Under the pieces are notes generated by a model. It was not told where the DNA came from. It did no database searches and saw only the letters and a program-made list of their open reading frames with translations. From positions 310,001 through 374,000 of the forward strand of contig CBFFRP010000423.1 of assembly GCA_965644295.1 (NCBI GenBank): a stretch of 64,000 nucleotides of DNA, read 5' to 3'. Below are positions 1,995-9,395 of the stretch, piece after piece; position 1 is the stretch's first letter, and each line of letters opens with the position of its first letter. This DNA is from Paraphysomonas bandaiensis. Lineage: Eukaryota; Protista; Chrysophyceae. A program made the position numbers and the translations under genes.

Positions 1995-3461
1995 ATGAAA
2001 AAATCAGCCAAAGAAGCTGTCCAAAATAAGAGCAAAGCATCACCTCGAAAGCAACTATGTAGTTTTTCTACTATTGAGGATGTGATCAGTGCGATCAACT
2101 CATGTAACAATATTTTAGTCATCAGCGGGGCTGGTATATCAGTGTCGTGTGGTATTCCAGATTTTCGATCGAAGAATGGTATATACAATACTCTCTGCTG
2201 CCAAGATATTGGAATTCCAGCTGCTGAGCTGCTCTTTGATTTATCATACTTTTTGATGGAGCCAGGTAGGTAGTCGTTGTAATATACGTCGAATGTTTTA
2301 GTTATGTGCTTCGTATCAGAACCGTTTTACAAGTATGCTCATAATTTGATGCCTCAAGACGTCACCCCTTCACTGTCACATCACTTTGTTGCGATGCTTG
2401 AGTCCAGGAAGAAGCTTCTGCGTAATTACACACAAAATATCGACGGTCTTGAGAGGGTGGCTGGAGTGACACGGCTTGCTGAGTGCCACGGCTCAATGGG
2501 TCTCTTCAAGTGCGTTAAGTGTAAGAGAAAGATAAAACGAGAGGAAGTCGTCTCAGATGTGGTAGCTGGACGGGTGCCTCGGTGCTCTGTCTGTTCAGGC
2601 CTGATGGTGATAATCTGTTGTTGTAGGTTTCTAGTGTAATTTTTACTTGTATACCATAGAAACCAGCGATAACTTTTTTTGGGGAGGCATTAGATCCATC
2701 TATTTCCAGGTATTTAAAAGACGATATTAAGCGCTGTGACTTGGTACTTGTGATGGGCACCTCGCTTAAAGTCGGTGGCGCGGTGTTGTCATTATTGGGA
2801 GACATCAAATCGGATGTTCCCCAGATTCTGTTGAATCTTGAGGCAGTGTCGCCACCAAAAGGACTCAGCGATGGATTTGACGTCTCTTTACTCGGGAAGT
2901 GTGATGAGGTCATCGCCTGGTTATGTACAGCCTTAGGATGGGGTAAGTTTAACACGTAGCAGACGCTGATTGACCGAATTCATCTGTTGCTATGGAATTG
3001 TGTTTTTGATTGAGGTTAACTGTTCTACAGATATTAATTCCTCAAGTTTTGCACCTGCAAAGATCAACAAAAATCGCAAGCGGAAAGTTACTGAAGCAAC
3101 TGTATCGCACGAAGGGACTATTCGAGAGTCGACGAAGGAGTTGCCCTGCTGTCGCCGCAAAGGTGAAAGAGTGTATTGTTTCACGACTCCTGGCGAGGAC
3201 CTACACCCTGATCTTGAAGGGTGTCCTGTGGTATCTCCGTACGTCACAGATACTGAATACAATGATAGCTCAGAGCAGAATCGTAATAAACGTATTGACC
3301 TCCCTCTTCCCAGTGCCGATATGTCTATGGAGACAAAAGTTACGTATGACCCTCAGTCTGATGACGATAAAACTAGTATCTGCTTTGCGAAACGCAGCAC
3401 TGGAAGAAATTTGCGTCAATTACGGTGTACGTCGAAGAGTGATGATTTTGTGTACTTTTAG
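1995..3461 (+). CDS. NAD-dependent deacetylase, Sir2/sirtuin family (class I-like), 4 exons
   Basis: GAGISVSCGIPDFRS, YTQNIDGLE, ECHGS, Zn motifs CVKC/CSVC, KPAITFFGE, GTSLKV. Introns 2266-2319, 2607-2659 and 2943-3030 restore the frame. Confidence 0.93.
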
Positions 3462-3677
3462 TTTGCATGTTTTAGTGTTCTCGTCAGTGATATATAATTG
3501 TTGTATATTATAATTATTACTGAATAAGATACTGTTGAGTTTTGCTTAAAGTTGGGCAATGAAAATCAATCGCATTAAACAATGAGAGAATTCGAATGTC
3601 TGCTCTTTATTCCCATTGAAAAGTAAGAACGTAAGTCATATATATAGTCATGTGTATATCAAAGGTATAATGCTATA

Positions 3678-3834
3678 TAGTGTTACTAAGTTGTTACTAA
3701 GTGTGAACAGAAGTAAGTGTTACTAAGTGTCGAAAGGTTATGTAAGTAAAAGTTACGTTGTATCGAATGTTAGTTAATGGTAAAAATGGAACAAACTAAG
3801 ACTAAGGAACAGATAGCAAAAAATATTACTAAGT
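3678..3834 (+). repeat. Four copies of TRTTACTAAGT downstream of Rep
   Basis: TGTTACTAAGT at 3681, 3692 and 3718; TATTACTAAGT at 3824, overlapping the Rep stop codon. Confidence 0.8.
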
Positions 3835-5277
3835 AGAAACAAACGATGCAGGAAGAAGTGCTAAGTTAGCCGACGGAAATGAATTGGTTTCAGTGAGCTG
3901 GTCATGATTCCGTGATGTCTCCAGTTCGGCTGTTCTAGCTGCCACATGCTGCTGCTCGTTTAAAATATCCATCCTCTTGCGGCGAATATTAGTAACGATT
4001 TGAATCATTTCATCCAACGTATCTGGACAAGTAAGATCATGCAATGTCTGATATAAGGGATCAGGACGGCGGTCTTCCATGATCGAATACTCTGCAGGAT
4101 CTTCAGGCAAGGGAGTAAAATCTTCCTCCAAAGAACGAGGCTGAATGCGTGGACTTTTACTTGCGCTCTGGAGGATATTCTGGATACGATGTATAGGAGT
4201 TATATGAGCTATACTGGAGATACCTTTCTGTCTATCATCATTATGAGGAGTCCTAATAGAGGGTTCACGTATTCTGGGTGAAGAACCAAGGGGTCCTGAA
4301 ATGAAATATCTTTCTCCAGTCCTCAGGCTGTGCATGGAATCGAAGAAAATGCGATCGGTGTCCTCAATTGTTGTATTTTTTGGACTGAACACAACTTTCC
4401 AGAGTGCTTCTCCTTCGTGGGTGTTGATTTTTGAATATTTTCGAATCCACTCTGGCGAAGGAATGTATCCACCAGATTGCATGGCATACATTGCTGTGTA
4501 CCTAAGAGGAGTAATGCACGGAAAAAGCACACGCATGAGAAACTTATACATTTCAGCAGTAAAATTCCTTTGCGTAAGTTGAACTTTACCTTCGTCAATA
4601 GATGTTAACTGAGACATATGTTTTAGGCGACCTTGTTCAAGATGAGCCCGTGGAATGTTGTGACATCTAAATTGAAACCAGGTCTGCCCTTCGTCCTTGA
4701 GAATATATCCGCACATGGTCGTAAAATCTTGTGTTTTAGTGAGCGGTTTGCAAAGAACTCTATGACCTTTACCTTTGTCGGTAAGAAAACTTTTGATAAA
4801 AGGACCAAGAACTTTAACAGCTTGTGGGGTACACGGGAAAAGGCACGAAAAAACTCCTTGCAGGTGAAGATTGTGGGCTCTGCGGCCCACTTCTGTGGAT
4901 AGTCCTCCTTTGATGCAGAAAGTTTGAACGAATGAGAAAATTTCGTCCAATGCCGGCACCGCTATGTCTGACTTTACTTTTGTGACAGTCAGAGACCATT
5001 GTGTCAAAGGATATCTTTCCCATCCAGGTGGCAAAAACGTTTTTAGAATTCTTCGCTGATACGGTGCCAGCAATGCAGTATCAGCAGGGTTGGAATACGA
5101 CTCTTCAGGTGCGACTTCCAGTTGTTCTGAACTGTCTGACTCATCGTTGTTATCTATGAAGTCTAAATCTGATGGAGAAGCTTCGTCCTCTACAGACGAC
5201 GCAAACAGATCATCGGAATCAGAGTCGCATACAGCTTGATCGTCAATAAAACGAGAACAAAAGCGCCGTTTTTTCAT
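3829..5277 (-). CDS. HUH (Y1) Rep endonuclease/transposase without helicase, Replitron-like
   Basis: Uninterrupted ORF (ATG 5277, MKKRR). RCR motif I WSLT, motif II EVGRRAHNLHLQG, motif III MCGYILKD followed by FQFRCHNI..LEQG. No Walker A/B. Acidic N-terminus (FIDDQAVCDSD...DLDFIDN). Confidence 0.85.
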   Translation of the reverse strand: MKKRRFCSRFIDDQAVCDSDSDDLFASSVEDEASPSDLDFIDNNDESDSSEQLEVAPEESYSNPADTALLAPYQRRILKTFLPPGWERYPLTQWSLTVTKVKSDIAVPALDEIFSFVQTFCIKGGLSTEVGRRAHNLHLQGVFSCLFPCTPQAVKVLGPFIKSFLTDKGKGHRVLCKPLTKTQDFTTMCGYILKDEGQTWFQFRCHNIPRAHLEQGRLKHMSQLTSIDEGKVQLTQRNFTAEMYKFLMRVLFPCITPLRYTAMYAMQSGGYIPSPEWIRKYSKINTHEGEALWKVVFSPKNTTIEDTDRIFFDSMHSLRTGERYFISGPLGSSPRIREPSIRTPHNDDRQKGISSIAHITPIHRIQNILQSASKSPRIQPRSLEEDFTPLPEDPAEYSIMEDRRPDPLYQTLHDLTCPDTLDEMIQIVTNIRRKRMDILNEQQHVAARTAELETSRNHDQLTETNSFPSANLALLPASFVST

Positions 5278-5372
5278 CGTTTTGTCCAAAAAACACACCG
5301 CAGAAGAAGCCAATCAGAAATGGAGGTTGCCAATAAAAAAGTGTCACTCCGACGCACACTGTGAGGACAAGG

Positions 5373-5449
5373 ATCTTTGTCGTGGTAACTCTGACTTGAT
5401 TGCAGTGAAATCTTTGTAGTGATGATAACTCTGACTTGATTGCAGTGAA
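5373..5449. repeat. Tandem 37/40-bp direct repeat upstream of Rep (iteron-like)
   Basis: ATCTTTGT(c/a)GTG(-/atg)..TAACTCTGACTTGATTGCAGTGAA occurs twice, at 5373-5409 and 5410-5449. Confidence 0.9.
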
Positions 5450-5539
5450 ATTGTGATTGTATAGTAATCGCAAAGCTGACTAAAGTGTGACGTCGAACAG
5501 AACATTGAAGTATGGGCAGGTACTGGTATGTGACACCAT

Positions 5540-5704
5540 TTTGGAATTCCAAGAAGCAGATTTTGGGATGGTTTGAGGGAACAAGTTAACGTCATCCAGC
5601 TGAAATCTTGATGTCGTATTGCTCAGAATAAAAGAAACCGCAACTTCAATTTTGAAGTAGCGAATGCCACGTACTTAGTTAGTTATTTGGAATTCCAAGA
5701 AGCA
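5540..5704. repeat. 19-bp direct repeat containing the palindrome TTGGAATTCCAA
   Basis: TTTGGAATTCCAAGAAGCA at 5540-5558 and 5686-5704. A small hairpin ACTTCAA-TT-TTGAAGT lies between them at 5643-5658. Confidence 0.85.
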
Positions 5705-5794
5705 ATATGAGAGAGCGAAAACACTGTGAGTTGTGCTATTATGTCACTCTTCTCAAGTCAGTTTTGTTAGTGCCAAAAATACTCAGTATTGACT

Positions 5795-6535
5795 ATGTTA
5801 TCCACACCTTTGAGTTCAAACAGTAGGACTGACTCTCAGTCGTCGTCATCTTCGTGTTCAAGTTGCTACAGCAGCCCTTTCAAGAGACGACAATGTGAAA
5901 TGGTACAGCAACTACACGAAACCTGTCCAAACTACAACCGATGTGAAGGGCTTTTACAAGTATGGAAGAAAGAGAAAGATTTATATGACCCAGAAGTCTT
6001 TGTGATGTGCTCCTCTAGAAATAAAGAATGCAGATACATGGTTCGTATAGCAAGCTTCAATACTAGCTGTCTATGCGGGAGAGCTATTGTAAAGGTGTAT
6101 GCCTCATTATGTATATAATATGTAGCTAAAATAAGCTTTTTGTAGGGTAATTTAATCACTCGACACAGTGAGAGTGACAAATGGGTTCACATGACCTGTA
6201 GGAATGCGGAGAGTGTGGATGGAAGTGCACCAATTTGTGCTGTGTGTCTCGAGGTTATTGAAGATGACGCAAGCACTATGCCGGTTAACATTGGAGGGAA
6301 ACGTGGAGTAAAGCATTTGGAATGCGCAGTGAAAGCTCAGTCCGAGTACGTCGTTGATTTATGTGCTGATTTACAGCATGAAACCGTGTTTGAAGTGGAA
6401 AAAGAAGACCATGCAGATGAGGTAGTGGATAAGCTCGACTCACTGCGCAATGCTCTCAGTCGTGGTAAAAAGAGAAATGCATCAGAAATGACTTTAAGCT
6501 CCAGAGACCCCCGGCTAGTATCTGGTAATAAGTAG
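5795..6535 (+). CDS. Multi zinc-finger protein, 2 exons, divergent from Rep
   Basis: The GT-AG intron 6095-6145 joins ORFs 5789 and 6191 in frame. Motifs: CPNYNRC...FVMCSSRNKEC (topoisomerase C4-ribbon-like), CLCGRAIVKGNLI...KWVHMTC (PARP-type/treble-clef-like) and CAVC...KHLEC. Confidence 0.75.
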
Positions 6536-7078
6536 TGGTACTAGAGTAGTAGAGTGTGGAGCTGGAGTACTACTATAGGGCTGTTGGGTAATAATCAGTT
6601 TATTCATTGTATGTACAGTTATTGCTCTTTTGTTACAAGCGCAAGCAATAATGAGAACTAGATGGTACTGTCTGTAATAAACTATAAGATTAGGTGAAAT
6701 TTATATATGCTCAAGATTTGTCGTTAATTTGCAGCAAACGCATGCATGTGTATGTAGTGCTGTAGTTTTAGTTTAGCCACCGACCTCGTTGACCAACACG
6801 TCTTCCTCTGAGGACTGACTCAAAGAATCCAAAACTAATTAGATATATACTAAATTGCTTCAAGTGTCTTTTATAATCAGGCTTGCGTAACCATTAATGG
6901 CGACGCATTGCTTCCCCCATTTTTATGGCCTTTGATTACTATTGCTTCATCGCTTTAGAAAGAAGTAAATGGAAAGTGTTAATAATTAGACTAAGTACTA
7001 GCTATTTAACCGCAATGATGAGCAGTTCGTTCCATGTTACAGGTCAGATAGCTAATGCGAACAATATTCTTAAACATC

Positions 7079-7238
7079 AATCGCAACTTGAAAGGATTTG
7101 CAGTTTGCTTGATGGCACCAAAGCTGAAACATTCTGACTGTACAAGCCACTAATATTTCGGAGCAAGTAGCTTGCACAGTCAGAATGTTTCAGCTTTGAT
7201 GCCATCAAGCAAACTGCAAATCCTTTCAAGTTGCGATT
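7079..7238. repeat. Long near-perfect inverted repeat (foldback), 73-bp arms, 14-nt loop
   Basis: 7079-7151 is the reverse complement of 7166-7238 with about 3 mismatches. Confidence 0.95.
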
Positions 7239-7657
7239 TGGCTTCCAAACCAGTCGTTTTCAATATGTAGATTGGTGTGTAAGAGGTTGTAGTGTGTTGT
7301 TGTCATACTTGTGCCTTCTAAGTGATGACGATAGAACCCCACAGAACAAGATTTCATAGATGTTTTCAAAGGTAACTGTAGGACATGAAGCCTACTGCTA
7401 TATACCGTTCTTTAGCTTTGTTTTGACCTAATGTATGTTGCATTGGTTCTACTTCACCTGCTATGACATCATTCTTCTATAGCGCGTAGCTATATGCGAG
7501 TATATGTATGTATTTGATAGCTACCGGATTCCACTTGGTCAGATAAAATCATGGAATATTTATATCACCAAAGATGTGAGCCAAACATATTTTCATTTCT
7601 GTACTACTATGCCATTTTAACTACCTAAACTTAAAGTATCAAGGCTGCGATATCGGT

Positions 7658-8415: not shown

Positions 8416-8918
8416 TGTTCTTGTTATTCTATGTTGAACTCGAATTAAATATTTTCTATGGCATAACGGGAGTGTGTTAGATGTATAGATGAATTCTGAG
8501 AGATAACTAAGTCCTTTGCCACGCATATTACATACCACACATACACAGTGCAGAAGTACATATATACATATACACACAGTTCTGTGTAGAGCAGTACACC
8601 CTGCATATACAGCAGTACAACATTTATAGCAGTACATACACACGTATATTCCATCAAAAACCCTCATTTTATCATCTGTGTATCTAACCACAGCGTACCC
8701 ATCGAGTAAAAACTACTGATATCTATAGTATATATACTGCTGTACTGTACGTACGCGTAGTAGAGGTAGGAACTACACGGTGCATTTCTGGTGCGGTTCC
8801 TAGCTACGTGTGTATCATGATCATGATCACGTACACACACATATATATATATATATACTCTACGTGTGGTGCTAATAACTAAAAGTATAAATTACAGTCA
8901 TTCATTGAGACTAATTCC

Positions 8919-9395
8919 ATGCAAGAACCATTCGTAGATGATATCGAATCAGGGGGTCCATACAACGACACCCCTGCGTCCTCCTCTCAATACTTCTGGA
9001 CTAAGAAGAAACTGTACGAGGGGGAGTGGCGAACATATCTGGTTCCAGTCCCTCTGTGGAGAGCTATCGCTACTCTCATACTCATATACACTTTTGCATA
9101 TTCATGTGATTTTATAGACAGTTTATGTACACAAGCTTCAAAGTTTACATGCGCTGTAACGCTCTTGGCCTGTACGGGTTATTTCGGGTGGGCAATATGG
9201 TGGGATGTGCCATATGCTGTACCGCCTACTTGGACCTTTATAAAACGACAAGGCTTTAACGCGTGCTGGGTATTAACATGGCTAATTTATAATGCGGTGT
9301 TGATTGGACTTGCAGTATTCGTATGCGTTTTAACTGTTGTTATAAATTATGGTGATTTAGAAGAAATTTTTAAGTGGGAATGCTTTCGCCGTTAG
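8919..9395 (+). CDS. Small multi-pass membrane protein, unknown function
   Basis: 158-aa ORF with an ATG start and about 3 hydrophobic segments. Confidence 0.65.
   Translation: MQEPFVDDIESGGPYNDTPASSSQYFWTKKKLYEGEWRTYLVPVPLWRAIATLILIYTFAYSCDFIDSLCTQASKFTCAVTLLACTGYFGWAIWWDVPYAVPPTWTFIKRQGFNACWVLTWLIYNAVLIGLAVFVCVLTVVINYGDLEEIFKWECFRR

Follow-up and report, generated by a model that had tools for sequence, protein, structure and literature searches.

The window analysed here is a stretch of 64,000 nucleotides (nt) of the forward strand of Paraphysomonas bandaiensis contig CBFFRP010000423.1 (positions 310,001 to 374,000). It contains, in head-to-head orientation, a gene for a helicase-less HUH endonuclease (Rep) of the Replitron type and a gene for a cysteine-rich protein with three zinc modules, in the following referred to as the zinc-finger gene. 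Replitrons are eukaryotic copy-and-paste DNA transposons with a helicase-less Y1 HUH (HUQ) Rep (Craig 2023, PNAS; Pfam families PF21859 and PF21860; PMC10288648). Their Reps carry the SUTU signature, HUQ in place of HUH, GYxxK and a conserved glutamate before motif II; Rep is the sole recognised domain of the elements and a second gene is unmentioned, and chrysophytes are listed as hosts from transcriptomes only (PMC10288648). The two genes of the window and the region between them are composed as follows (coordinates are those of the window).

3832..5277, (-) strand: Rep coding sequence, 482 amino acids from the ATG at 5277, stop codon at 3829-3831; Y1 HUH endonuclease, Replitron type
4987..4998, (-) strand: Rep motif I, WSLT (SUTU signature), invariant in Rep alignment A3
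4855..4875, (-) strand: Rep motif II, HNLHLQG (HUQ variant of HUH), from Rep alignment A3
4693..4710, (-) strand: Rep motif III, GYILKD (GYxxK; single catalytic Tyr191), from Rep alignment A3
4342..4566, (-) strand: probable Replitron domain 2 (Replitron_C, putative oligomerisation domain), from the Pfam alignment
5278..5794, no strand: intergenic region (5'-5'), 517 nt, between the Rep and zinc-finger ATGs
5795..6094, (+) strand: zinc-finger gene exon 1, 100 amino acids; family hidden Markov model (HMM), E 2.3e-14
6095..6145, (+) strand: predicted intron, phase 0, 51 nt, GT..AG (donor GT at 6095, acceptor AG at 6144-6145)
6146..6535, (+) strand: zinc-finger gene exon 2, 129 amino acids plus stop (6533-6535); family HMM, E 1.9e-26

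The open reading frame (ORF) of Rep, 3829..5313(-), is intact and comprises 494 codons when counted from a TTG and 482 when counted from the ATG. WSLT, HLQ, GYILK and the conserved glutamate, E129, which lies in STEVG just upstream of motif II, could all be identified in the window Rep and are invariant across alignment A3. Motif III contains one tyrosine (YILKD). An initial annotation of this DNA had described an intact Rep ORF of 482 amino acids with WSLT, HNLHLQG, GYILKD and a single tyrosine, and its coordinates were confirmed. The Pfam model Replitron_HUH matched residues 99-217 of the window Rep with 47.2 bits (cut-off 28.5, E 3.6e-12), and Replitron_C matched over profile positions 1-77 of 77 with 25.8 bits (cut-off 27, E 1.4e-5). 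In this Pfam scan, performed at E ≤ 10, only these two families were found, with no match to Viral_Rep and none to helicase families, and a search for a Walker-A motif in Rep was negative as well, in agreement with the lack of a helicase noted initially. Because the curated Pfam model and all three motif signatures match, it is concluded from profile and motifs that the window Rep belongs to the Replitron family, and the Replitron-like identity first proposed was upheld by this HMM check.

Four full-length relatives of Rep (P0001-P0004), which are located on short metagenome contigs, showed 45-48% identity to the window Rep over 84-98% of its length. P0003 and P0004 carry PF21860 (Replitron_C), and the conservation among the relatives reaches the C-terminal helix. 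No record was found in an exact-sequence look-up of the window Rep, no match in a PDB sequence search and no relatives in an IMG/VR scan, and a metagenome scan with the Rep alignment returned one short, uninformative contig (L011). The AlphaFold2 (AF2) model of the window Rep, calculated from a five-sequence alignment, was poor (mean predicted local distance difference test score (pLDDT) of 44.6). Foldseek searches with this model gave sub-significant matches, including Rep domains of circoviruses, smacoviruses and a vientovirus, which are suggestive only.

The ATG of the zinc-finger gene is at 5795 (+) and is separated by 517 nt from that of Rep on the opposite strand. Exon 1 encodes a serine-rich N-terminus, module 1 (C-x5-C ... 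C-x6-C) and half of module 2 (C-x-C), and its N-terminus, MLSTP.., agrees with the start sites of the relatives. Exon 2 encodes the rest of module 2 (WVHMTC) and module 3 (C-x2-C ... H-x2-C); its C-terminal part has an acidic tail and a patch of basic residues (KKR) and ends in the conserved motif RDPR(L/V). The two exons were searched separately, and natural intronless homologues were used as proxies for the whole protein. These homologues align uninterrupted over the predicted splice junction of the window gene, so that the divergent, intron-containing, cysteine-rich gene 517 bp upstream of Rep, as annotated at first, was recovered with its 51-nt in-phase intron bridged. Among the homologous loci described below, an intron is present at the same site in L006, L009 (~58 nt) and L010 (61 nt), while it is missing from L001, from L003 and from L004, a contig of metagenomic DNA.

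In 21 members of the zinc-finger family, module 1 follows the pattern C-x(2-5)-C ... C-x(4-8)-C, module 2 the pattern C-x2-C ... W-V-H-x2-C and module 3 the pattern C-x2-C ... H-x2-C. All predicted zinc ligands are retained in the window copy (12/12). The modules are followed by a low-complexity tail with basic patches, and RDPR(L/V) occurs in the closer relatives of the window, L001 and L003. For the family member P0005, AF2 gave pLDDT values of 90-98 at residues 50-140 and of 83-85 at residues 150-180. The family is small: of 1.84 billion clusters, only 53 had a representative with E ≤ 1e-3, and none of these 53 showed a domain fusion, neither to Rep nor to any other domain. No Pfam match reached the gathering score (the best was PHD with E 0.019, in 1 of the 21 members), a PDB profile search remained below significance (best E 0.014) and the model had no significant Foldseek match in either PDB or BFVD (best E 0.26). 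Sub-threshold hints pointed to PZP/PHD, RING, LIM and DUF2175. An IMG/VR scan revealed no relatives of the zinc-finger protein, the Y1_Tnp and TnpB families matched neither this protein nor Rep, and a PHROGs search yielded nothing of note. By these profile and structure searches, the protein represents a previously unclassified family without classified relatives. The predicted protein P0044 (313 amino acids) is made up of tandem copies similar to part of the zinc-finger protein (GNLIT.H...KWV.LP) and probably reflects a satellite that arose from exon 2 in a dead gene copy.

Pairing of the two genes across loci

On the contigs of the Rep relatives, the divergent upstream gene encodes a protein of 251-254 amino acids that aligns with both exons of the window gene. 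When the search was performed from the zinc-finger side, more homologues were found on eukaryotic contigs of 8-27 kb, and tblastn and HMM scans identified a Replitron Rep head-to-head with each homologue on these contigs. A distant partner, P0057, which was detected by profile search only (E 1.7e-4), also has a divergent ORF upstream with a Rep N-terminus and motif I. In total, a Replitron Rep and a zinc-finger homologue were arranged head-to-head in all nine independent loci in which both sides are visible, namely the window, L001/2, L003, L004, L006, L007/8, L009, L010 and L013/14. L005, L011 and L012 were too short to be included in this count, and L015 shows only an acidic Rep-like N-terminus. 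The pairing persists across zinc-finger proteins with only ~22-35% identity, and no free-standing member of the family, or one in host context, was seen among the inspected loci. This Rep lineage has the zinc-finger gene as a conserved accessory, physically linked to Rep in every informative relative.

Co-occurrence of the two genes had been set beforehand as the test that could refute the initial annotation, and each Rep or zinc-finger relative with a visible upstream side was found to have its partner. It had also been suggested that a conserved accessory gene would be an undescribed organisation. With the pairing in nine of nine loci, and no mention of a second Replitron gene in the searchable Replitron literature including the founding paper, this suggestion held.

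Selection on both genes was estimated from L001 and L004 as the ratio of nonsynonymous to synonymous substitution rates (dN/dS). This ratio was 0.09 over 533 codons of Rep, 0.044 over the 85 codons of the zinc-finger core and, with looser constraint, 0.35 in the serine-rich N-terminus of the zinc-finger protein. In L006, L007 and L010, Rep contains stops, frameshifts and deletions, and in L006 and L007 the zinc-finger gene is broken as well. The zinc-finger gene is under purifying selection in live lineages and decays together with Rep in dead copies.

At the level of the lineage, several signs of mobility could be observed, namely differing flanks, decayed copies and at least three copies that are probably in one genome. 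The host neighbours by locus are JmjC/PARG, TCTP/PhoPQ-related, GRIP, MMS19/EF-hand and, in the window, SIR2/lipoyl, and the flanks of the longer contigs are mutually unrelated. An unrelated 76-nt repeat is common to L006, L007 and L010, which therefore probably derive from one genome with at least three copies. This repeat of 76-79 nt, which may be a miniature element, is located at 12361-12439 in L006, 11706-11781 in L007 and 913-991 in L010, with 92-96% identity, all in one sample.

Three of the loci showed additional features. In L007, an ORF for a deoxynucleoside kinase (Pfam dNK, E 1e-28) at 8844-9389 (3049-3594 in L008) separates the partner gene from the decayed Rep and occupies the expected place of the Rep N-terminus; it could be a capture or an insertion. 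L006 has, at 2488-4687, an insertion of 2.2 kb relative to L010 between Rep and the partner gene, and its ORFs (82-212 amino acids) gave no Pfam match. L013 (18-1586 and 1205-1939) and L014 (1-1567) contain a Replitron relic in which the partner gene is intact and Rep is truncated just before motif II. The relic adjoins an ORF of 522 amino acids with T4 gp36-like tail-fibre repeats. This junction is not an assembly chimera, because it is 99.9% identical in two different sequencing runs, and the context may be viral or virus-derived.

Repeats and ends of the element

Outside the coding sequences, the following repeats and candidate boundaries were identified in the window.

5383-5411 and 5423-5451, intergenic region: two 29-nt tandem repeats
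5540-5558 and 5686-5704, intergenic region: two exact 19-nt repeats, each with the palindrome TTGGAATTCCAA
3679..3834, (-) strand: subterminal array downstream of Rep in which ACTTAGTAA(C/T) occurs four times (Rep strand)
3649..3657, (+) strand: candidate right boundary, CATGTGTAT, tentative
6716..6734, (+) strand: weak match (17/19) to the left-end block of L001/L006/L009/L010, marginal (11/200 shuffles as high)
6745..6753, (+) strand: candidate left boundary, second CATGTGTAT in the same orientation, just past the block at 6716-6734, tentative

The subterminal array downstream of Rep consists of three exact 10-mers in 47 bp and a fourth copy that overlaps the Rep stop. Arrays of the same motif are present 100-330 nt past the Rep stop in L003 and L005. 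A local alignment of the window with the L003 flank reached a score of 34, compared to 20.7 ± 2.4 for shuffled sequences, and none of 300 shuffles scored as high. Elements with Reps of only ~45% identity have this right-end array in conserved form. The array at 3679..3834 is likely a right-end cis element or a set of Rep-binding iterons.

At the opposite side, L001, L006, L009 and L010 have a common left-end block ~215-260 nt past the stop of the partner gene, beyond which they diverge, often into (TATG)n-like sequence. The 9-mer CATGTGTAT occurs just twice in the window, and its two copies bracket a unit of ~3.1 kb (3649-6753) at the expected places. The ends of the element are therefore placed tentatively at about 3649-6753. 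In L001, a 17-nt subterminal direct repeat was found (E 0.002). The left end of L001 (at ~150-230) enters a long (TATG)n array, and after it the terminal motif GTCTACTATG is repeated in tandem. TGTA/TATG-like sequence at the left end was also observed in L006, L009 and the window, and could result from a preference for certain targets or from slippage at the terminus.

The intergenic region at 5278..5794 presumably holds a bidirectional promoter or regulatory sites. Five relatives have a palindrome with arms of 16-32 nt between Rep and the zinc-finger gene. Two of these palindromes were folded and gave folding z values of -4.9 (L001) and -9.0 (L003). No loop motif was shared among the palindromes. 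When the intergenic region and the right end of the window were searched for hairpins of the type found in CRESS DNA viruses, whose circular, single-stranded genomes encode a Rep, none was significant (z -1.2 to +1.9).

Interpretation of the locus

Taken together, the region from ~3.65 to 6.75 kb of the window probably represents one apparently intact copy of a Replitron, from a lineage with a second, divergent gene for a protein of roughly 230-250 amino acids with three zinc modules. The two-gene Replitron variant is confirmed as real and apparently intact, and no description of it was found in the searchable literature. Several observations weigh against this reading of the window. The long intergenic palindrome of the five relatives is missing, and direct repeats are present instead; the match to Replitron_C lies 1.2 bits below the curated cut-off; and the best structural and profile matches of the zinc-finger protein (PZP/PHD, RING, LIM) are all non-significant. 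The pair of CATGTGTAT copies was picked post hoc, and two copies per 64 kb are not unusual. The left end is ambiguous, since its matches are marginal and a second candidate lies near 7253-7275. Finally, only one copy is present in the 64-kb window, so that mobility in this genome is putative and the termini are tentative, and the young age assumed initially was not supported.

The window element shares with published Replitrons a Y1 Rep with SUTU, HUQ and GYxxK, the conserved glutamate, a probable domain 2 and the lack of a helicase. It also agrees with them in a size of ~2-4 kb, a low copy number, stramenopile hosts including chrysophytes, and short direct repeats located close to or at the termini, which in the window are candidates. 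Replitrons as published consist of Rep alone, whereas the lineage of the window adds a conserved divergent triple zinc-finger gene. Unlike the published elements, this lineage also has a multi-copy motif array downstream of Rep and, in most relatives, an intergenic palindrome. The prokaryotic IS200/IS605 elements (TnpA and TnpB) resemble it in having a helicase-less Y1 HUH transposase beside an accessory gene and in single-strand transposition that depends on host replication, but TnpB, an RNA-guided nuclease of the RuvC type, has no relation to the zinc-finger protein, and TnpA showed no sequence match. Helitrons and IS91 are likewise rolling-circle HUH transposons that use zinc-finger-like modules. 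In these, however, the transposase (Y2 Rep) carries the zinc module as an N-terminal fusion, whereas the window has a separate gene and a single tyrosine; Helitrons additionally possess a helicase of superfamily (SF) 1B, which is absent from the window Rep. Serial C4/C2HC modules and a W-x-H-x2-C signature connect the zinc-finger partner to PZP/extended PHD, RING and LIM fingers, but the match was never significant in Foldseek, PDB profile or Pfam searches.

The similarity to CRESS-DNA viruses and pCRESS plasmids requires more attention, as these, too, are compact units in which two genes are arranged ambisense, the Rep is of the Y1 type (often HUQ) and iterons and hairpins occur, and their Rep fold appears similar in the weak Foldseek matches of the poor model. 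In this respect the locus could be an endogenised CRESS-like virus or plasmid, with the zinc-finger protein as the second, structural or regulatory, gene of the replicon. This would agree with two ambisense genes in ~3 kb, the Y1 HUQ Rep, the iteron-like repeats and the intergenic palindrome of the relatives, and among Replitron Reps only those of chrysophytes were linked to CRESS Reps in clustering (PMC10288648). However, the window Rep has neither an SF3 helicase nor a Pfam match to Viral_Rep, a nonanucleotide stem-loop is lacking, and relatives of either protein are missing from IMG/VR. A circular overlap was seen on no contig, and the palindromes have no common loop motif. Moreover, the copies of this lineage lie within chromosomes and degenerate there, and their opening is on the 3'-3' side and not at the intergenic palindrome. 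An origin of the window copy as such a replicon is therefore considered very unlikely. Of the CRESS virus resemblance proposed initially, the ambisense layout stood, but nothing beyond the layout did; what occupies the capsid position is, as had been noted, a zinc-finger protein, with three zinc modules and no capsid-like match.

The two genes might also have been exapted together as a domesticated single-copy host locus with a cellular function. The single copy in the window, the two intact ORFs, the purifying selection on both genes in the relatives and the missing palindrome are all compatible with domestication, but the relatives are found in unrelated contexts and are decaying, and the right-end cis array, which a domesticated gene would not need, is kept and conserved with L003. 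A low copy number is, in addition, usual for autonomous Replitrons (PMC10288648), and exaptation seems quite improbable. A different explanation concerns the zinc-finger gene only, which might be a passenger that was captured once from a host and has no role in transposition. Helitrons and other DNA transposons are known to capture host genes, and a kinase ORF is located between the two genes of L007. Against a passenger stand the absence of free-standing or host-context members among the inspected loci, the tiny family of 53 representatives with none fused to another domain, a linkage that spans proteins of ~22-35% identity, and a zinc-finger core that, with a dN/dS of 0.04, is as constrained as Rep, which makes this explanation highly unlikely. 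That an ordinary cysteine-rich host gene adjoins a single-gene Replitron by chance is contradicted by the data, because the pair co-occurs in nine of nine informative loci in the same orientation, and is extremely improbable.

For the two-gene Replitron, a mechanism can be proposed in which Rep would nick and rejoin single-stranded DNA at signals near the ends of the element, with the ACTTAGTAAC array downstream of Rep as the best candidate for the right-end signal. For this, the element might depend on replication or a helicase of the host, which is what has been proposed for Replitrons in general. The zinc-finger protein would most plausibly be a cofactor or regulator supplied in trans, a role that we infer because it is constantly linked to Rep, strongly constrained and a zinc-finger protein. 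As a nuclear nucleic-acid-binding protein it might recognise, on behalf of Rep, the element's cis repeats (ends or iterons), or regulate the bidirectional promoter common to both genes, and its part would then parallel that of the fused zinc-finger-like modules of Helitron and IS91 transposases. The constant presence of this partner suggests that Replitrons can need a helper protein. A more far-reaching proposal, which we consider rather unlikely, is that the zinc-finger protein is an obligate trans partner of Rep and that the ambisense palindrome layout is a relic of a CRESS-like circular replicon ancestral to Replitrons. If the partner were obligate, this would be the first two-component eukaryotic HUH transposon, and if the origin were CRESS-like, the chrysophyte elements would be placed near the root of Replitrons.

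The selected partner protein is a concrete candidate for a DNA-recognition or regulatory function at the ends of a helicase-less Y1 Rep, and it defines a new zinc-finger family. The locus also provides the first genomic structure of chrysophyte-type Replitrons, through which the group is connected to CRESS-DNA Reps. For annotators, the zinc-finger gene can serve as a second marker, which keeps such loci from being called as host genes.

Flanking sequences and host

The element is flanked by ordinary host genes on both sides, as the initial annotation had described, with SIR2 on the left and a gene for a biotin/lipoyl-domain protein followed by one for a USP47-like hydrolase on the right. The description of the surroundings as repeat-rich DNA was not borne out: no second copy of any part of 3401-7400 was found within the window, Tandem Repeats Finder (TRF) detected only a few short tandem arrays, and the sole large repeat is an inverted repeat at 7079-7238. 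An Rfam scan of the window gave no match. The inverted repeat has arms of 73 nt that are 96% complementary, separated by a 14-nt spacer; it is single-copy in the window and positioned between the element and the lipoyl-domain gene. It was evaluated as a possible left end and rejected, as the 11-12-mers in common with the left ends of the relatives were at chance level.

The host was assessed with the TTLL9 ORF of the window, which is 92% identical to an MMETSP transcript; its best matches were chrysophytes, with 73% identity for Mallomonas marina and Chlorochromonas danica and 67% for Epipyxis. The remaining named matches were all from stramenopiles. Therefore, the host is a stramenopile nearest to the chrysophytes, in line with the probable stramenopile assumed at first. 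A TTLL9 fragment labelled Symbiodinium microadriaticum (P0067) is 81% identical to the chrysophyte-like TTLL9 of the window, far above the true stramenopile outgroups, which suggests contamination in that Symbiodinium assembly.

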